Shown here: positions 10,342-45,000 of the stretch, piece after piece
Position numbering within the stretch: position 1 is the first letter of the stretch
Layout: every line of letters starts with the position of its first letter
Assembly: GCA_002269645.1 (NCBI GenBank)
Contig: NIVC01002168.1
Location: 1 to 64,000 of the forward strand
Length of the DNA stretch: 64,000 nucleotides
Direction of reading: 5' to 3'
DNA from: Macrostomum lignano
Lineage: Eukaryota
Translations under genes and position numbers: made by a program
The notes under the pieces: generated by a model
Seen by the model: the letters and a program-made list of their open reading frames with translations, nothing else
What the model was told of the DNA's origin: nothing
Databases searched by the model: none

Positions 10342-12261
10342 TAATATATATATAATATATTTATCTCTTTAAGACTTGAAGATTTATTCCCAAGACTAAT
10401 TATGACTAATTAGTAATAAAGAAATATATAAACATTATTTAGGTCTATCTATTTAGACATTTTAACTATGGAGTATGGCCATCTTGTTCTTGGTATGTAG
10501 CCATCTTGGTCATCTACCATTAAGGCCTAGGTATACACTAGGCCTAGGCTATTGCCAAATGCCTATTTATTATAATAGGCCTAACAAAATGGCCCCATTG
10601 GCATAATAAAATATTAAGCCTATAATTTAATAAAATCTGTGGCTGTGGCTAGGGTTGGGATGCCTATAATGTAAAAATAAAAATATAGGGCCTAAAGTAG
10701 AAAATAATATAAGAATAAGCCTATTTTATTAATAATATTAATATAGGCCCCTATTATTTGAGAGATATTACAATTTTTTGTATTATTCAGTCTATTGTTT
10801 GCCTTGATTAAAAACTGTATTGATTAGGCCTATCCTACCTAACCTAGGCAAAAACTTAAATCATATCAAATATTATGAAAAAGAAAACAAACATTAACTT
10901 ATATTTATTTTCTTATATATTATGGCCAATATATTTTGACCCTTGTAGGTCATCATCAGGGTAGTAATGAAAATTGAAAATTGAATAAACAGTTAAATAA
11001 ATATATATGTATTAATATATATTAAATAAATATAACATGTTTATTCAATTTTAAGTGGTGATTATAAACTGAAAGATAAACTGAAAGATAATGATAGCTA
11101 TTTGCTAAGCAAGCAATGAATTTAGATTTATGATGACTCAATTTAAATAAAATGATTAATTATAAATGTTGCCACTTAAATCAGGCAAAATAGAAAGATT
11201 TTAATCAATTCTGCTACATATCATCTTTACCCTCTTGCTGCTATTTTGGTTATGCATAAATATGGCTAAAGGCCCAAAGAAATATGGCAATCAACAACTA
11301 TGTGCCCTCTCCCAGGTATTGGTAGAATGTCTCAAACCTAATATTCACTTGCATTTACCTAGGATACATTTGCTAGTAATGCCTGATAGTGTGGCCTTGG
11401 TGAACTTGCTATAGCAGACACTGCACCTGTTGTATGTTATACTAAAGTAGGGCTAGTAGAAAATACAAATTCAGCACTTTTTTCTACTCTTGTTGAGCTA
11501 TGTGTGCCAAGCTGAAGCCTCCATGGTATTTTTCATCCTTGTGAACCACTCAAAGATGAAAATGGTATCTCAGTCCCATATAAGGTGCTATAGCCAAGTT
11601 GCACACACATTCTATTAGCTCTAGAAAGTGCTAATTTGCTCTTGCCATTGCAGTGCAGGCTGCAAGACCATCTAGCATACAAAGAAATGGCAGACAAGAA
11701 ATCAAAAGTAGCATACATTCTAATAACTTTACTATCAGGGAAGTTAAATACTGCATCTGCAATCCAAAAGACTGGACTTGCCTGAAAATAGCCTGGTAAT
11801 AATGAAAAAAGCAACCACATTCCACAAACTTAGGCTGCTAGATAAACTAGCCAAATGGCTTGCTAGGTGGCCAACTCAAAGTTGCAGATAAATTGGATTG
11901 GTGCATTATTAGTTAACTCTCATACCTGCTAGAAGTAGGCCTGGTATTCAGCCTGAACCTTACCTGATATTAGAAAGAATACCAGTGGTACCAGATTTTC
12001 TCAATTGTCATAGCAAATGACTCTATGAAGGCTGTGCAGCTGCATATAAGGTGCCTTGACAATGCCAAATGTGCCATTATAGTGCAGAATATGTTGGGTA
12101 GATAGGATCTCCCATTATATTGTAGACATAAAAACAAAGTGCTATCTATTTGTCTCTTGGACAATAATGTCTTGCAATCAAAATCTGGGGGCACACCATA
12201 CATGTGCAACAGTTGGCCAAGTCAGCTGATCGGGCCAACCGATTTGGCGGCCAATCAAGGA

Positions 12262-12491
12262 AGTCGCAAAAATTCCCACCCAAAAAATACTAAAATAGTA
12301 GTACTAAGTAGCTGATGAGGCATTTTGACCTAATAAGAAAGTCATAGTTACTCCTGCCGTTTACCCAAAGTTGCGTTAATTTTGCTTTAGGGTTTTTTAC
12401 ATGTAAGTCGCATTTTTTGCCAAAAACTATGTCGCATTTTTGTTAAAACTAAGTTGCATGGCCGACTGAATGTTGGAGGTTGCGCATGTAT
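12262..12491 (-). mobile_element. Dispersed repeat containing a 28S rRNA-derived segment, copy A
   Basis: The reverse complement aligns with 41714-41917. 12366-12303 matches the remembered eukaryotic 28S H69-H71 sequence at 52/64 ungapped. Confidence 0.75.
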
Positions 12492-12868
12492 ATGGCACAC
12501 ACTTAGGATCAACCTGAAAATGGATATTAACTAGCTCTGTGGAATGGCTTTTTATAAGAATAATTAGCATTGCAACTTTAGGAATCTATATTAATCAGTC
12601 TATACTTCTTTTAAGAGCTCTCTTACTTTCTCCTTAACAAAAATGCAAGCAGATTTGAATGGCACTCACTTTGTTTCTGTTTTTACCTGAGCTATAATAA
12701 ATCTTTTTTTCAACTGGCTGATCAACTGAATTGTAGGTATGCTCTTTCAAGGCGTGATTTGTTCTGTCTTGATGCTTGACATATGAGCCTAGACATTTTG
12801 GTGTAGTTTTATTGCAACAATAGTAAGTGTTGCTGTTTTGCCAGCTCTTGACATGCAGCAAGCAGTCA

Positions 12869-13552
12869 AGATCATGCCTGATATACTGCACTAGCAAAGT
12901 CTTTGTTGTGGCTAAATCTAGCACTTGGAATATGCTCAAAAGCCTGCAGGGATAGGCTAAAAGGTGGTGCCAACATTGGAGGCTTGTGAATAGATTCTTT
13001 GAGCACAAGTTCAGCATCAGAAAATTGAAATAATGAAATAAAAACCTCTCTTCCACTTCTATATGAAAGACTAAAAGCAATGGCTCCTCTTGGTCAATTA
13101 GCTTACTACCTAGTCTTGATCCTAGAAAGGTTGGCTGCATAGTAGCAACTGGAGCAGCTTAGGGTGCAGATGAAGGCATACCTGCAATTAGCCTAAGGCA
13201 TCGATTGCATAGATCATGCCTGATATACTGCACTAGCAAAGTCTTTGTTGTGGCTAAATCAAGCACTTGGAATATGCTCAAAAGCCTGCAGGGATAGGCT
13301 AAAAGGTGGTGCCAACATTGGAGGCTTGTGAATAGATTCTTTGAGCACAAGTTCAGCATCAGAAAATTGAAATAATGAAATAAAAACCTCTCTTCCACTT
13401 CTATATGAAAGACTAAAAGCAATGGCTCCTCTTGGTCAATTAGCTTACTACCTAGTCTTGATCCTAGAAAGGTTGGCTGCATAGTAGCAACTGGAGCAGC
13501 TTAGGGTGCAGATGAAGGCATACCTGCAATTAGCCTAAGGCATCGATTGCAT
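12869..13552. repeat. Near-exact 342-bp tandem duplication
   Basis: 12869-13210 is repeated at 13211-13552; the two minus-strand ORFs share an identical N-terminal translation. Confidence 0.92.
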
Positions 13553-13869: not shown

Positions 13870-14310
13870 ACCCACTGTTTCTTAGAGAGTAGAGAAAAGG
13901 TGAGAGTGGAGAGAGGCTGCATAAGAGTGAAGAGATTTTGAGAGTAGAAAGAGAGTGAGAGTAGAGAGATGTTGAAAGTGGAAAGGAGCTGAGAATAGAA
14001 AGATGCTAAGAGTGGAATGAGCCTAAAAGTAGAGAAAGGGGAGAGTAGATAGAGACTACAAAAGAGTAGAGAGATGCTAAGAGTAGAGGGTGAGAATGGA
14101 AAGACACTGAGAGTAGAAAAAGGGTAAGATTTGAAAATGCTAAGAGCAGAGAGATATTGAGAATAGAGAAATGCTAAGTGTAGAGAAAGCCTGAATATAA
14201 AGAGGGTGAGAGTAGAAAGAGGCTGCATGAAAGTAGAAAGAGGCTACACAAGAGTAGAGAGATGCTGAGAGTGAAGAGAGACTAAGAGTGGACAAAGGCT
14301 TAAGAGTGAA
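13870..14310. repeat. Degenerate purine-rich AGAGTAGAGA repeat
   Basis: Read directly. Confidence 0.75.
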
Positions 14311-15959
14311 TTATTATTATGAGTGAGTGTATTATTAAAGCTAAATGCCTCATTATCTAATTAATACCATGTGCATTTTTGTGACTGCAACATTTTTACA
14401 ACTTACCTTGGCAGTTAAAAACATCCATTGGAGGCACAAAGGCCAAAGATATTAGACAACAGACCCATAAGGCAAACCTACCATTTGTCTCATTTTACCT
14501 TGACTTTGATCTAAAACTAATAACTCTTATATATATAGTGGCAAAGATGAAGCAACCAATTGTTACTATATAAAAACTCTATTAATATCATTTTGTGCCG
14601 CTTAAAAATCTGTCATCTATTCCTATAGACTCAAGTATAGACATACACATTAGCTTAGGATTAAGGATAGGATCTCTTAAAATAGAAATACACTTTTTAT
14701 CTTGTTTGAGGGCAATGCATAGACAAGTGGATAAATGAATCCATGTGTGCATTGTATGAAACTGATAGAAAATGTAAGAGCTATATCAAATATGTCATTA
14801 TTGAAAAAGCATGTTGCATCATTCATTAGCTCTAGATAATTGACACTTTTAGGCTTGTGGGCTAAACTAGAAATCCCTGCTCTGAAATTTAACTTTTTGA
14901 ACCATGGTTTTTAGTGTCAAATATATTCTACCTCAATCCAAATCTAAATATAATCAAATATTCTAAAATAATCTAATATATATTCGATAATACACATATA
15001 TCTATATAATACTATTTTTGATAAGCTTAACAATATCATAATATAAAAACTTGTTTTTGTAGATCTAAATATTTAATATATAGGAACTAGAAGTCATTGA
15101 TAGATAGTCAACCAAGAATATTATATAAAGTCAGGAACTTTGTAATTTATAAAGATTATTAAGATTAATATTAGTGATTATACACTAGATTCTTAAGAGG
15201 GACCTGCCATATTTGGTTGCATGACAGTACTAGTCCTATAGGGCTATATAGAAACTATTAAAAAAGCTGATTTATTTAGCATACACTCCAGATATAAATC
15301 AATGTGACCCTAACCTGTTACTGCTATTGCCTAAAGATAAGCTTTTTAGTATAGTTTTCTAAGCTATATAACAAACATGTGATTCTGGCACTGCCATTAG
15401 AATTTGGAAGCAGCAATATGTAATATATTATGTAGCAATATGTATTTATTGTAAACAAATGCTATCTCAAAGGACTATTGAGAGCTGTAACTTTCCTATA
15501 GTTTGTTTTAATTTAATATAGTTATTAAACAAACATTGGATATGCCCCTTATATTATAACTGATTTGTCTGGAAGTATTTTATATTGCTGATAAATTGAT
15601 TATTATCTTTTAGTTTGATCTTGATCTCTGATGAAACCATAAGTAATTAAAACTTTATATACAGTTATTTGGAAGTTAAATGATAAAGAAAATGAAAGCA
15701 AGGATATAGCAATCAAAAAAACTTTTAAAAATGATTGAATTCCAACTTAAAGGTTCAATTGATTGCTTTGGCCTTTGGTCAATAAGTATTAAAAATAGAA
15801 TTTAACATGCAACAAAAGAATTTAGAAATAATATATGCATTATGTATCTTAAGCATATTGACTAGCAATCTTGTGCCCCCCTTTGGGGCGGCCAATAAGC
15901 AAGGGACGAAAATAATTTGTGTATCCTATTTGCCTTGACATCTTAGCGATTCCTCCATA

Positions 15960-23077: not shown

Positions 23078-24692
23078 ATGACGACGCGAGCGCCAGTCGC
23101 GCCGGCCTGGAGCGGAGCCAACACCGACGCATCCCCCAGCAGCCCCAAGCTGGCCGTGGCCTCGTCGTTAAGCCGCCTATTGGACAAAATTCGCCGATTA
23201 GAAAGCGAGAGAAACTCGGCTGAGGCCGACATGCGCCAGCTGGCCAGCGAGACCGCCCGGTTCCGGCACCTGCTGACCACCAGCCCGCCCGCCGCGCCTC
23301 CTTCCATGCCGCCGCCGCCGCCCCCTCCAGCTGAAGTCTTCAGCCGGCAATCAGCCGACATCGAGGCCCGCTGTCGCAGCCTGGAGCAGCAGCTCGAAGC
23401 GCTTCGCCTAGAAATTCTATCATCGAAATCTGATGGCGCGTCGAAGCCCAACAGCGATGCCAACGGTCAGAGTCGGCGGCGCCGGCCGCAGCCGCAGCGG
23501 CCGAAACCGCCTGGCTTCCTGGCCGGCCGGCCGGGCACCTCGCACAACCTGCCGGCCAACCTGCAGACTGTGCTGGGCCTGCTCAAAACCCAGCCAGCCG
23601 CTGCGCCCATTGCGAAGAGCGCCAGCAGCAAAGCGTCGCCTCGATCGACGGCGTCGACTTCGTCTGGCGCAGACACCGCTGCATCTGCCGCTGCCGCCGT
23701 CACTCTGTCCAGCGACAGGCTGCGCGCCTGTGAGCTGCTGCACGAGATGCACCGGGAGCTGCTCGAGCTGACCAGACGATACGCCGAGCTGGCCCGTCGA
23801 ATTCGAGACGTCGGCGACTGTGAAAACGACGGTGCAGGCGGCGGCGAGTCGGGCGAGAAAGCGCGGGAGCGGCGGGACCGGCTGTGCCGCAAGCTGGAGC
23901 ACCTGGCCCAGCGAGTGCAGGTAGTTATTCATTTACCAGTACAGCTGCAATGCCTTCTTCGTCAATTTTTGCGGAGTTATAATTAGAAGATCAAGGTACC
24001 CGTTCCGGACCCCTGAGCACTGTGAGCACCGCTCAGCGTGTGGGTCATGACTGCCTAATTATCCGTTGAAAATGTGGGCGTGACAAGCATCGCTACAAAG
24101 TGAAGTCATTGTAAACAACTCGCTGGCGACTCTTGTGACTGGTTAACAACTCAACGCGTCCCTCGAGTTGTAGAATCGTAAAAAGAGTTGCGAAAGAGTC
24201 GTTTAGGAATCGTTGTGCTAGCGACGCAAATGCGCTTAAAACACATTTCGGCGACTCAAGCACGCCTCAAATCGACTCTACCGCCAAGAGTTGTCATACC
24301 GTTACGTCAGAGTCACGTGTATCGCCTTAGAGTCGTTTCAGAGTCTCTTTGGCGACTTTTATCATGACATCTCGTTCGTTTACCTACTTTCGCAGGCCAA
24401 GAGCGCCCAGATTGCTCAGTTTGAGTCGCTGCGGTCACGTCTGGAAGCTGCCGAGGCTGCAGCCGCCACCGCCGCCGTTTCTCCCGCCTCGCTGACGCCT
24501 CCTCCTCCAACGACGGTGGTCGCCGCCGCTAAGGAGAATCGCCGACCGACGTCTGCTCGACGCGCCAAGTCTGTGGTTGCCTGCGGCGCCTCCTCAGCTG
24601 CTGCCGCTGCCGAGGACAAGCGAGAGCTGCTCAGATCTGCCAGGACCTGTCAGAGGCGTCTACTGACTCGGGAGGACATCAGCTGGGTGTGA
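23078..24692 (+). CDS. CEP57: CEP57/CEP57L1 (translokin) family centrosomal protein, 2 exons
   Basis: Exons 23078-23920 and 24396-24692 (phase 0). LLDKIRRLESERNSAE, ARCRSLEQQLE, GFLAGRPGTSHNLPANLQTVLGLLK, a C-terminal coiled coil and the terminal REDISW resemble CEP57/CEP57L1. The start could lie slightly upstream (phase-0 acceptor at 23053). Confidence 0.8.
24100..24360. mobile_element. GACTC/GAGTC-rich dispersed repeat in the CEP57 intron, related to 41540-41710
   Basis: 24251-24281 GCGACTCAAGCACGCCTCAAATCGACTCTAC resembles 41578-41609; TAGAGTCGT..AGAGTC is also shared. Boundaries are approximate. Confidence 0.5.
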
Positions 24693-37122: not shown

Positions 37123-37794
37123 TAAGAGGTGTCCAAAAAGTCTTAGGACTTTTCACATGACTCTTTTTAATAGTCAGCAAGAGTTACAGCAACTGATTTA
37201 TTTCATTGTGGCTTAATTTAAAAATAACATAATGGAATAATTTTGAAAATATCATGAACTTTTTAAAATTTATGCCTTCTTAATTGCAGTGAGGTACTGC
37301 ATCTCAATACATGAACAAGAACTAGAATTGAACTACAATTTTGATGGCAGTCAAAGATGTTGCCAAGTGTTGGCTAGAATTTTTTCCCAATCTGTGGATC
37401 CATGGATGTCCATTCAAAGACAGCACAGCATTGCTTGGCCTACACCCTCTGGTGTATAGCATTGAATGGCATAATTCATGGGCCTGAAACAATATCCAGG
37501 ACTGACTGCCTTGACCATGAAGTGCAACAGGTTCTTGTCCACAAAATGCCAAAGCAGGCATACACAGATGCCATTGATGACATGCTTACCTGGTGGAAGA
37601 AATGCATCCAACTGAAGGATGAATATATTGAGAAGGTCTCAGTTGCCACTGAGAAAGAAATTTGAACTTTTTTGAAAGACACTGTTTCCTGGTGCTCCAT
37701 ATGCAGCATCCAAGTTCCTGTTTATGTATTGAGATGCAGTGCTGTTACTCTTGCTGACTGTTAAAAAAGTCATGTGAAAAGGGCACCCCTCGTA
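37123..37794 (+). mobile_element. Internally deleted mariner-type (Tc1/mariner) transposon remnant
   Basis: Inverted ends (left TAAGAGGTGTCC..TTTTCACATGAC..AGTCAGCAAGAGT, right ..GTCATGTGAAAA..CACCCCTCGTA) with TA termini. The internal frame AYTDAIDDMLTWWKKCIQLKDEYIEK resembles the mariner transposase C-terminal W-x-K-C..Y-x-E motif. Confidence 0.72.
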
Positions 37795-41125: not shown

Positions 41126-41713
41126 GCATCTCCAGTTGTGTTTTTGCACTGATCTGAATTTGATATTTTTTTAAATTCCGTCTCCCCCTTTTAATTTCAG
41201 CTGAGCAGCCAGCCTAGGCCGATTGGTTAATATAGCGCGCCGGGCTCTTCTCGTGACAGACAATTGCGTCTAGACTTGAGGACAATTTTGTATTTTTGTG
41301 CCAAACTTGTAAATGTTGAACAATTGTATCATATACGTCAGATAAGCACATTCGAAAGCATCCTAAAAATGGCCTTTTCTTACTTTTTTGCCATATTTGT
41401 TCAGGCTTTAGGATTAGTTATTATTAAGTTATGGTGACAGGGGGTTTCAGGCGCTGCCACAAGTCAAGGCGGCAGTCGACCTTGATTTTATTGCTTTGCT
41501 ATCTACTACAAGTAGCACTGTCAAGCCCGTTTAAAAACGTTACCGTGACAAGAATCGCTAGTCATTCTGATTCTACAGCGACTCCAGCACGCCTCAAACA
41601 TGACTCTACGGCCCTGGAGTCGCAGGAAATGAAACACCTCTCGTCGTTCTAGAGTCGTCTAGGAGTCACTTCTTTGCCATTTGCACTTGTGTTACTTGCA
41701 ACGACTCCAGGGC

Positions 41714-41917
41714 ATACATGCGCAACCCCCCTGATTTACACTGGCCACGCGACTTACTTTTTGACCAAAAATGCGACTTACCTGTGAAAAAAACCCTAGA
41801 GCAAAATTAAACTTTGGGTAAACGGCAGGAGTAACTATAACTGTCTTATCAGGCGTAAATGCCTCGGCAGCTAATTAGTACTACGTCTGTATTCTTTGGG
41901 GTGGCATTTTTGCGACT
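41714..41917 (+). mobile_element. Dispersed repeat containing a 28S rRNA-derived segment, copy B
   Basis: Homologous to copy A; 41816-41879 matches remembered 28S at 51/64 ungapped. Confidence 0.75.
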
Positions 41918-42098
41918 CCGGGGCATATCTTGGCCGAAGGTAGACAGTCACGCAAGCAAAAGCTCACTCAGGGTGTACAGCGTCTCTGATACGGATATCC
42001 ATTAATTAGTCCGTCAATTGTCTTCCATGCTCACTGGCGAATCTCCGCTGTCAAACTGCACCAATTAACAATCTACTAGTGGAAGAAGAACAAGCAAA

Positions 42099-45000
42099 AT
42101 GGCCAGCAGCGCTGAGCAGCAGCAGAGCGGGCGCAGCTGCGTAGCCGCCCAGTCCATGCGCTGCCTGGCCGAGATGTGCGGCATCGCCAGCCTATCCGAG
42201 GAGGCCTGCCAGCTGCTGGCAGATCAGGCGGACTTCCGCCTGCGCACCCTCATCCAGCAGGGCCTGAAATTCGCCAGGCATGGCAAGCGGCGCCGGCTCC
42301 GGTCGGCCGATCTGGCGGCCGTGCTGCGGCAGCGGCGTATTGAGCCGCCCTACGCCTACGAGTACGCCGCCACCCTGCCTATGCAGAGCGTCCAGGTGAG
42401 ACCTGCCAGGGCTGCTGGTTGGAGATCCGGCATTTTTGCAGACCGCTGTGATGGGCTCTCATGCCTCGTATTCGTACTGTCTGATTATCATAATCATGAC
42501 TGATTGCTATTGCATACTGAGCGGATTCTTCTATACAACACCTCACTTGTTGTCCTGTACTAGAAATTCACCATCCTGTACCAGTCCCCCACTATCCTGT
42601 ACCAGTCTCACGCTATCCTGTACCAGTCTCCCACCATCCTGTACCAGTCTCACGCTATCCTGTACCAGTCTCCCACCATCCTGTACCAGTCTCACGCTAT
42701 CCTGTACCAGTCTCCCACCATCCTGTACCAGTCTCACGCTATCCTGTACCAGTCTCCCACCATCCTGTACCAGTCTCACGCTATCCTGTACCAGTCTCCC
42801 ACCATCCTGTACCAGTCTCACGCTATCCTGTTCAGTCTCCCACTATCCTGTGCCAGTCTCCCACAATCCTGTACCAGTCCCCCACCATCCTGTACCAGTC
42901 TCCCACTATCCTGTACCAGTCCCCCACTATCCTGTACCAGTCTCACGCTATCCTGTACCCGTCTCCCACCATCCTGTACCAGTCTCACGCTATCCTGTAC
43001 CAGTCTCCCACCATCCTGTACCAGTTTCCCACAATCCTGTTCAGTCTCCCACTATCCTGTGCCAGTCTCCCACAATCCTGTACCAGTCTCCCACCATCCT
43101 GTACCAGTCTCGCACTATCCTGTACCAGTCTCCCACAATCCTGTACCAGCCATCTGCTATCCTGTACCAACAATGCACCATCCTGTACAAGCCTCCCACC
43201 ATCATTTACCAACAATGCACCATCCTGTACCAGCCTCCCACCATCCTGTACCAGCCTCCCACCATCCTGTACCAGCCTCCCACCATCCTGTACCAGCCTC
43301 CCACCATCCTGTACCATTCTCCCACCATCCTGTACCATTCTCCCACCATCCTGTACCAGCCTCCCACCATCCTGTACCAGCCTCCCACCATCCTGTACCA
43401 GTTTCCCACCATCCTGTACCAGCAGTGCACCATCCTGTACCAGTCTTGCGCAATCCTGTATTTTGCATTCCGAAAGCAAATCCTATTCTGCTAGCGGTCG
43501 CTCTCACCCACCCTGTATCACCCGTCCTCCCGGATGCAGGCTCCCGGCGGCAAGCGGCTCTTCTTCCAGGAGTCGGAGGAGGTGGACCTCACCGAGCTGG
43601 CCTCGCAGCCGCTGCCCCGCCTGCCAGTCGGTGCCTGCCTCAAAGCGCACTGGCTCTGCATCGACGGCTGCCAACCCGCCATCGCTGAGAATCCGCCGCC
43701 AAGGCCTGCGACCTCCTCCGCTGCGGCAGCTGCACCGGCTGCTCCCGGCGCTGCCGCTGCCGCCGGCGCCGCGGCTTCATCCGCGTCGTTAGTCGAGCCA
43801 GGCGTCGGGTCGGCGGCGCTGGCCTCCTTGTCGACTTCCGCAGCCGCTGGGCCGATGCGGCCCCGCTCGCTGTGGGAGCTGACGGTCCTGGGCGGCCGGC
43901 AGTCAGCCAGATCGGCAGCCGCCGCGCCCAGGGAGCCGGAGGTGGCCCGGCTGCGCGATGTTGTCTGCCACGAGTTGAGCCGCGAGCAGCAGATGTTCTT
44001 CAGGGAGATCTCCGAGGCCTGCGTTGGCAGCCAGGTGAGGCCCTCAGTGCCTGTTGGTATCATCAGCTGGGGCAGGGGTGGGGAGATCAGCTGGGGCAGG
44101 GGTGGGGAAATTAGCTGGGGCAGGGGTGGGGAGATCAGCTGGGGCAGGGGTGGGGAGATCAGCTGGGGCAGGGGTGGGGAAATTAGCTGGGGCAGGGGTG
44201 GGGAAATTAGGTGGGGCAGGGGTGGGGAGATCAGCTGGGGCAGGGGTGGGGAGATCAGCTGGGGCAGGGGTGGGGAGATCAGCTGGGGCAGGGGTGGGGA
44301 AATCAGCTGGGGCAGGGGTGGGGAGATCAGCTGGGGCAGGGGTGGGGAGATCAGCTGGGGCAGGGGTGGGGAGATCAGCTGGGGCAGGGGTGGGGAGATC
44401 AGCTGGGGCAGGGGTGGGGAGATCAGCTGGGGCAGGGGTGGGGAGATCAGCTGGGGCAGGGGTGGGGAGATCAGCTGGGGCAGGGGTGGGGAGATCAGCT
44501 GGGGCAGGGGTGGGGAGATCAGCTGGGGCAGGGGTGGGGAGATCAGCTGGGGCAGGGGTGGGGAGATCAGCTGGGGCAGGGGTGGGGAGATCAGCTGGGG
44601 CAGGGGTGGGGAGATCAGCTGGGGCAGGGGTGGGGAGATCAGCTGGGGCAGGGGTGGGGAGATCAGCTGGGGCAGGGGTGGGATAATGATGGCTCCCGCA
44701 GCCAATCAGAGAGCTGCCAGAGAGCAATTGCGCTGGCTTTTTACTCGCCTGTCTATGGCTAAACCTGGCCCACCCCCACCCCAATGCGCAGGAGGACCGG
44801 CGGACCGAAGCCCTGCAGAGTCTGGCCACGGACAGCGGCCTGCAGCAGATCCTGCCTCGTCTCATCGTATTCGTGGCCGAAGGTGTCCGGGTGAACTCGC
44901 TCACTAACAACCTGGCCCTGCTCATCTACCTCATGCGCATCTTGCAGTTCCTGCTGCAGAATCCTCACCTGCAGTTGGAGCGCTACCTGCACCTCATCCT

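Follow-up and report, generated by a model that had tools for sequence, protein, structure and literature searches.

Non-autonomous elements that are bounded by TIRs and TSDs and spread fragments of host genes are known as Pack-TYPE or transduplicating elements (PMC8903248, PMC6379663, PMC2572040). Transduplication itself is known in Pack-TYPE elements (PMC8903248, PMC6379663) and has rarely been described in animals (PMC2572040). Pokey/mPok, members of the piggyBac family in Daphnia, carry repeats derived from the rDNA IGS as well as subterminal repeats (PMC3849761, PMC10946416), SINE28 of mammals is a Pol III retroposon made out of the LSU's 3' end (PMC4994717), and 28S sequence forms part of some R2 RNAs or 3' UTRs (PMC5035012, PMC3414825). 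In a 2024 review of rDNA and transposable elements, the table of rDNA-derived element sequences lists only SINE28 for the 28S and Pokey for the IGS (PMC10946416).

In the 64-kb window, by which we mean the whole stretch of DNA that was analysed, we find three copies (A, B and C) of a repeat that contains a piece of the 28S rRNA gene. With a probability of roughly 0.6, we propose that these copies represent a small non-coding DNA transposon family of the TIR type (MITE-like, ~300 bp) that carries the H69-H71 region of the 28S as a passenger captured once, the captured fragment measuring about 65-80 bp and at most about 120 bp. Non-autonomous TIR elements capturing host DNA are already known as a kind (PMC8903248, PMC6379663, PMC2572040), and we regard the family as a genuine, though not very unusual, example of a DNA transposon with picked-up host DNA. 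Copy A resembles Pack-MULE, Pack-CACTA and Turmoil-1 of C. elegans in having TIRs, a TSD and an internal fragment of a host gene, its 28S segment being recognised with E ~1e-12 to 1e-13. Yet the cargo of Pack-TYPE elements consists of protein-coding exons, whereas here the cargo is a piece of an rRNA gene, the host looks animal-like and not like a plant, and the element is much smaller (about 300 bp).

Pokey/mPok likewise represent a DNA transposon or MITE with a link to rDNA and with subterminal repeats. However, Pokey inserts into the TTAA of the same 28S region and generates a TTAA TSD, whereas the present element contains this site and has a TSD of 8 bp; in addition, Pokey carries IGS rather than 28S sequence and its termini are unrelated. 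R2 and the R2-derived SIDEs involve the same 28S site as the module described here, but the present element shows no similarity to an RT, a ribozyme or the R2 3' UTR, and its 28S sequence runs uninterrupted across the insertion site, inside the element rather than at a junction. The continuous 28S, a TSD other than TTAA and a tblastn search with two R2-type RT sequences, which found no R2-like RT in the window, set the repeat apart from rDNA-specific elements such as R2 and Pokey, and having neither a Pol III head nor a 3' tail it also falls outside the SINEs in general. With SINE28 it has in common only that it contains 28S sequence. The first-pass annotation of this DNA had drawn an analogy to SINE28, which we abandon, as the module comes from the middle of the LSU (about 2230-2310, within ~2199/2228-2320, of the 3401 model positions) and makes up about a quarter of an element that has TIRs and a TSD and lacks a Pol III head and tail. 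Of the mobile family with an embedded rRNA module that had been suggested there, we retain the mobility and the single propagated 28S piece, but we do not regard the family as SINE28-like or wholly rRNA-derived.

The two copies that had been reported on opposite strands, A at 12491-12262 (minus) and B at 41714-41917 (plus), were located as claimed and are ~82% identical. When a 411-nt piece around A was compared with the 64-kb window by BLASTN, positions 12262-12435 aligned to 41917-41749 (E=1.5e-40; 176 columns, 82.4% identical). The window contains the 23-mer GGGTAAACGGCAGGAGTAACTAT at two places only, 12344-12366 (minus) and 41816-41838 (plus), and 0 occurrences are expected in shuffles. 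As to the extent and number of copies, A and B proved real, but A is larger than described, its full unit comprising 12197-12492, and a third copy has to be added. Copy B extends from 41713 to 41935 (plus), with an intact 5' end and a 3' end that is rearranged or truncated and has no TIR. Copy C (14324-14410, plus) is degraded, old and 5'-truncated, its 5' side running into a minisatellite; it was picked up with A and with B as queries, and likewise with the 28S consensus (E=0.002) and a real LSU gene (E=0.008), and its identity to A is ~56% in the 64-nt core and 70% in a local BLAST alignment. It retains the 3' half of the module as GCTAAATGCCTCATTATCTAATTA (28S: GCCAAATGCCTCGTCATCTAATTA) and, downstream, the non-rRNA element motifs TTTTTGTGACT and ACAACTTACCTTGG. 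An nhmmer profile built from A, B and C detected only these three copies in the window, matching A at 12197-12491, and the envelope obtained for C (14280-14450, E=1.6e-24) is circular, as C was in the profile. The copies show graded divergence and unrelated outside flanks, A and B are oppositely oriented, and three of them lie within 64 kb, all of which agrees with the dispersed mobile-type repeat family originally suspected. The boundaries, superfamily, abundance and age of this family rest on three copies in one window.

As a reference for the 28S we used positions 2199-2320 of the Rfam LSU_rRNA_eukarya consensus, read from the cmscan output. Over the 64-nt core the ungapped match to this consensus is 52/64 in A and 51/64 in B, reproducing exactly the counts given in the first-pass annotation, and gapped BLASTN against the consensus yields significant 28S matches for both copies (A 65/82, E=1e-13; B 54/66, E=4e-11). 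A second LSU query set that avoids the bias of hand-picked queries, made of nine metagenome rDNA contigs, some of them 8-12 kb long, matched A at E ~1e-12, B at 5e-9 to 5e-11 and also C, with no other match in the window. The module of A occupies 12302-12382 (minus), with the 64-nt core at 12303-12366, and corresponds to LSU-eukarya ~2228-2307; the core of B lies at 41816-41879 (plus). The module corresponds to H69, given by the structure line of Rfam as GGGAGU-AACUAUG-ACUCUC, together with H70 and H71, and covers the R2/TTAA insertion site, reaching from roughly -35 to +29 around the R2-type site. The LSU-gene match within A is limited to element positions 111-191, and the flanking parts of A have no similarity to genuine LSU genes or rDNA contigs. 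The 28S share of the element is 64-81 of 296 nt, about 22-27%; as a whole, the element is not derived from rRNA.

The module scores 11.2 bits in A and 9.7 bits in B by cmscan, compared with a gathering score of 50, and many base pairs are broken, the H69 stem having lost pairs in A as well as in B. These low scores and broken pairs indicate that the similarity is that of a decayed DNA copy and not of an RNA folding like rRNA. At the gathering threshold no Rfam family matched anywhere in the window; mir-5928, SAM-II and ST7-OT4, which came up around A and B in E-value searches of Rfam, were dismissed as chance noise.

These data also bear on a non-mobile origin, in which a scrap of rDNA (an orphon or pseudogene) was duplicated locally or the resemblance to the 28S arose by chance. 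All three copies seen lie within 30 kb and no copy turned up in external collections, as such an origin would predict, although these collections hold almost no animal genomes and absence from them is uninformative. The E-values of 1e-11 to 1e-13, the unrelated outside flanks, opposite orientations and graded divergence of the copies and the TIRs and TSD of A make this origin exceedingly unlikely, and in an orphon or rRNA pseudogene the rRNA homology would run through the whole repeat, whereas here it is confined to about 80 nt.

In 57 of the 64 core columns the 28S base survives in one or more of the three copies, so the progenitor lay closer to the 28S than any copy seen today. What is left are two differences, a G-to-A change in GGCAGG and a block of 8 nt at the TTAA/R2 site. 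That one captured fragment was propagated, as had been argued before from shared non-28S changes, is borne out by the non-rRNA sequence that borders the module, which shows homology on either side among A, B and C. We consider this homology a stronger argument for a single capture than the shared GGCAGG and CAGCTA. Indeed, GGCAGG can no longer count as a non-28S change: dozens of genuine metagenome LSU genes carry exactly GGCAGGAG, and GGCAGG is therefore possibly the state of the host's own rRNA. The CAGCTA change is present in A and B, as had been noted, but C retains the 28S-like T (TATCTA), and it follows that CAGCTA arose within the family after C had split off.

The most diverged part of the module compared with the 28S is the block of 8 nt exactly at the TTAA/R2 site, which reads AGGTAGCC in the 28S, TTAGGTCA in A, TCAGGCGT in B and TTAAAGCT in C. 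This block is curious, as simple neutral decay would not predict it, whereas paired small indels would produce it. A reading of the TTAA site as a "footprint" of a TTA duplication and an inverted 28S bit, GTGGGAAT, downstream of the module were both considered and set aside as unsupported speculation.

It is conceivable that the module is functional, standing in for R2/Pokey-type targets, on which rDNA-specific elements would land or be decoyed, or directing the MITE to rDNA as an arm of homology. The insertion hot spot used most heavily in the 28S (PMC3849761) lies at the centre of the module; over the initial 33 nt of the core, A agrees with the 28S at 31 positions, and strong alteration is limited to the 8 nt at the cleavage/TTAA site. 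We nevertheless hold a functional module to be very unlikely: its conservation does not significantly exceed that of the remaining sequence (A-B identity of 86% in the module core against 80% in the other parts, Fisher p=0.32), none of the three modules is interrupted, the window has no R2-like RT, the actual cleavage-site bases are the ones that were lost, and three copies are far too few for detecting selection. Highly improbable, too, is the specific version in which the module has been kept as a copy of an R2/Pokey-type site, serving as a pad, as a decoy that protects the rDNA or in homology steering, with the scrambled 8 nt being a footprint of the traffic. No sign of a function of the module was found.

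The evidence for a transposon of the TIR type comes from copy A. Its 296 bp run from TIR to TIR on the minus strand, the 5' TIR (12479-12492) being TATACATGCGCAAC and the 3' TIR (12197-12210) GTTGCACATGTATG; these terminal repeats are 14 nt long, match at 12/14 positions and form inverted-repeat arms at 12198-12210 and 12479-12491. Directly abutting the TIRs is an 8-bp TSD, 7/8 identical, that reads GTGTGCCA on the 5' side (12493-12500) and GTGTGCCC on the 3' side (12189-12196). When the whole window was scanned for 14-nt inverted repeats (at least 12/14) lying 100-800 bp apart and abutting an 8-bp direct repeat (at least 7/8), only A was recovered, besides two trivial hits inside an AGATCTG minisatellite, and 40 block-shuffled windows gave 0.125 cases per window. 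The start of the TIR coincides with the start of the A-B homology, B opening with the counterpart CATACATGCGCAAC at 41713, and the terminal 14-mer occurs in the window in A and B only, with no further TIR copies. No empty-site paralogue of the flanks of A was found in the window.

In the 5' half of the element, A carries three direct repeats of ~24 nt (12403-12461, minus; AATGCGACTTAC, AATGCGACATAG and CATGCAACTTAG) with a T/A-rich spacer, and B carries two such units (41746-41781, plus; CACGCGACTTAC and AAATGCGACTTAC). We regard the subterminal repeats of A as putative transposase-binding sites. On the 3' side the GCGACT-type motif is present once, as TTTTTGCGACT in the form TTTTTGCGACT(T)CC; in A this side holds the motif GTGGGAATTTTTGCGACTTCC (12256-12279, minus), the left half of which, together with the 5' repeats, forms an inner inverted repeat that brackets the module. 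The first-pass annotation had described flanks that are not rRNA-like and carry repeated GCGACT motifs, as in DNA transposons, and the 14-nt TIRs and 8-bp TSD of A fit this idea. The longest ORF lying mostly inside the element encodes 41 aa (12387-12512), and the longer ORFs listed (47-79 aa) have most of their length in the DNA around it. No special structure was apparent when A was folded (z=-0.87), and a scan for bacterial promoters and terminators was uninformative.

With 296 bp and a longest ORF of 41 aa, A has the size and coding content of a MITE. We propose that a transposase would be supplied in trans by an unseen autonomous relative and would bind at the 14-nt termini and at the repeated (A/T)5-TGCGACT subterminal motifs, followed by excision and by reinsertion with an 8-bp staggered cut. 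The 28S piece may have entered the progenitor by template switching or gap repair (transduplication), a capture that the high copy number of rDNA would help. Once inside, it presumably had no function in the element and would have been carried along, decaying with the rest.

TSDs of 8 bp are characteristic of hAT elements, and the pair GTGTGCCA / GTGTGCCC has this length, but TSDs of about 8 bp are also generated by P, Merlin, Novosib and some MULEs. The hAT elements have a terminal YARNG motif and a TSD consensus of nTnnnnAn, whereas the terminus here is CATAC and position 7 of the TSD is C. As CATAC is outside the usual hAT motif we assign no superfamily, hAT, P, Merlin and some MULEs all being compatible with a TSD of 8 bp.

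The TIR reading has against it that the window contains no transposase gene and no further TIR copies, and the ends of B and C fit it less well. Their similarity to A ends shortly past a common CTTGGCC, and the 55 nt that precede the 3' TIR of A are unique to A. A search for a 3' TIR or a TSD in B and C gave nothing convincing; B does have CTCCAGGG/CTCCGGGG as a candidate TSD, but it has no 3' TIR. TIRs are recognisable at both ends in A, at the 5' end only in B and at neither end in C, so TIRs and a TSD occur together in one of the three copies and the 3' boundary of the family rests on the single copy A. Copy B is bracketed instead by a direct repeat of 15 nt, CGACTCCRGGGCATA, at 41702-41716 and 41913-41927 (plus), which is not predicted by a cut-and-paste model. 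Its two copies, CGACTCCAGGGCATA at 41702 and CGACTCCGGGGCATA at 41913, match at 14/15 positions, and the repeat takes in both the putative 8-bp TSD and the initial 4 nt of the element. This repeat is possibly the result of a microhomology-mediated deletion between the GCGACT(T)CC motif of the element and the 3' TSD; a templated repair patch and a long TSD of the retroposition type are possible as well.

The last of these possibilities belongs to a different reading, namely that the family is a retroposon (SINE/SIDE-like) with a 28S body, mobilised by a LINE and possibly by one of the R2 type, whose target lies in the module. The direct repeat around B does resemble a LINE-type TSD, B and C have no 3' TIR, and the -35 to +29 interval covered by the module surrounds the insertion site of elements of the R2 type, which encode an RT. 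However, the GCGACT motif in the direct repeat is part of the element in A and C, and the repeat is therefore not a clean TSD. In addition, ARAGORN found 0 tRNA genes and Rfam no 5S, 7SL or snRNA match in the window, there is no visible A-rich, microsatellite or LINE-derived tail 3' of A, B or C, SINE28 was made out of the LSU's 3' end, a different region (PMC4994717), no RT of the R2 type was detected in the window and A has TIRs with an abutting 8-bp TSD. Taken together, we judge a retroposon to be quite improbable.

A further alternative is that the 28S segment is the cargo of a different or larger element, either composite or nested with a repeat rich in GCGACTC or obtained by a Helitron-like capture, with the TIRs and TSD of A reflecting a secondary rearrangement and not the boundary of the family. 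Consistent with this, B abuts a second repeat rich in GCGACTC/GAGTCGC (41512-41712, found also at 24040-24360), an alternative inverted repeat, GCCCYGGAGTCGCA, is present at 41611 and 41924, and B and C lack the 55 nt found beside the 3' TIR of A. Yet the homology of A and B starts exactly at the TIR in both copies, the inverted repeat at 41611/41924 is without a TSD, and A has no such second repeat upstream and nevertheless has a clean TSD. We therefore consider a larger element rather unlikely and retain the small TIR-type family as the preferred explanation.

The second repeat is a dispersed family of its own (family G), the copies of which, at 41512-41712 and 24040-24360, contain GCGACTC/GAGTCGC in both orientations and are colinear over about 200 bp. 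One of them lies immediately 5' of B, the other in an intron-like stretch that ends at a splice-acceptor-like site near 24395. As the motif of family G resembles the subterminal repeats of the 28S element, the two families may be related and may share a transposase.

Outside the window, a gapped element-specific pattern was found 0 times in metagenome and genome contigs and a second element-specific pattern 0 times in genome and viral contigs, collections that include few animal genomes; a 20-mer query gave 0 matches in viral contigs, and a literature search for the diagnostic strings of the element returned 0 papers. A scan of metagenomes with TAAACGGCAGGAGTAACTAT yielded 55 loci, most of them ordinary LSU genes with exactly GGCAGGAG. 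None of the 55 carries the flanks of the element, and as candidate copies they were rejected, being genuine LSU genes, insertion junctions or unrelated 28S scraps. The GCGACTCCAGGGC-like hits at 38.3 kb of the window were likewise rejected, as they lie in an unrelated acyl-carrier-protein exon.

Among these metagenome loci, R2-type insertions at the 28S site covered by the module are present in L002, L010, L034 and L053. In L010 (272-3499, minus), L034 (2845-3561, plus), L002, L053 and L023 the LSU is interrupted right after TTAAGG (or TTAAG), and the interrupting elements encode RVT_1 domains and N-termini with zinc fingers, which makes them R2-type retrotransposons of environmental eukaryotes; in L034 and in L010 (1076 aa, E=3e-33) RVT_1 ORFs follow the LSU break. 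In contigs of unrelated organisms, short pieces of this 28S region were seen in a non-rDNA context at L041 (128-172, minus), L044, L013, L040 and L001/L003/L025. The scrap in L041 is 45 nt long and agrees with copy A throughout its first 33 nt, down to the T in GACTTTCTTA. L044 has an array of four tandem units with a period of 51 nt that contains the fragment. Having no element flanks, these fragments were excluded as copies. Insertions at the R2 hot spot may have left them as side products, although the sample is biased by the search pattern.

If confirmed genome-wide, the family would document the transduplication of part of a 28S rRNA gene by a DNA-type (TIR) element, and the part taken covers the insertion hot spot of R2-type and Pokey elements. 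Elements of this type give false "LSU-rRNA" hits when repeats are masked or rDNA is mapped by FISH or BLAST, and can pass for dispersed rDNA.

The Pfam domains detected in the window point to ordinary eukaryotic genes and are PAF-AH, CCDC6-like DUF2046, CoA-transferase III (AMACR-like), acyl carrier protein, a TAF domain and 7tm_3 (class-C GPCR). For the AMACR exon the best match has 68% identity, the top matches with a name come from vertebrates (64-69%) and none is a close relative; the TAF ORF had no recorded counterpart, and the contigs that encode the best matches proved to be compact eukaryotic fragments unrelated to the window. The TAF domain (TAF6-like; PF02969, E=5e-18) is encoded by a first exon at 42099-42503 (plus), and B lies 180-390 bp upstream of its start codon at 42099. 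With its end ~180 bp 5' of this ATG, B probably lies in the promoter or the 5' UTR, but there is no indication that it regulates the TAF-domain gene. Adjoining copy A is a tandem duplication of about 525 bp (12634-13482, minus), in which the ORFs 12634-13140 and 13159-13482 have an identical N-terminus of 91 aa with no Pfam match. The C-terminus of an ORF at 37402-37665 (plus), ending in MLTWWKKCIQLKDEYIEKV, recalls the end of a mariner-type transposase, which is an impression, the ORF having no Pfam hit. Minisatellites with units of roughly 20-35 nt are very dense in the window, for example at 25.7-26.8, 31.6-33.3, 38.9-39.6, 43.6-44.7, 56.0-57.0, 58.5-59.7 and 61.7-63.4 kb, and contain long spurious ORFs in several frames. 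The exons are very GC-rich and adjoin AT-rich spacers of 31-33% GC.
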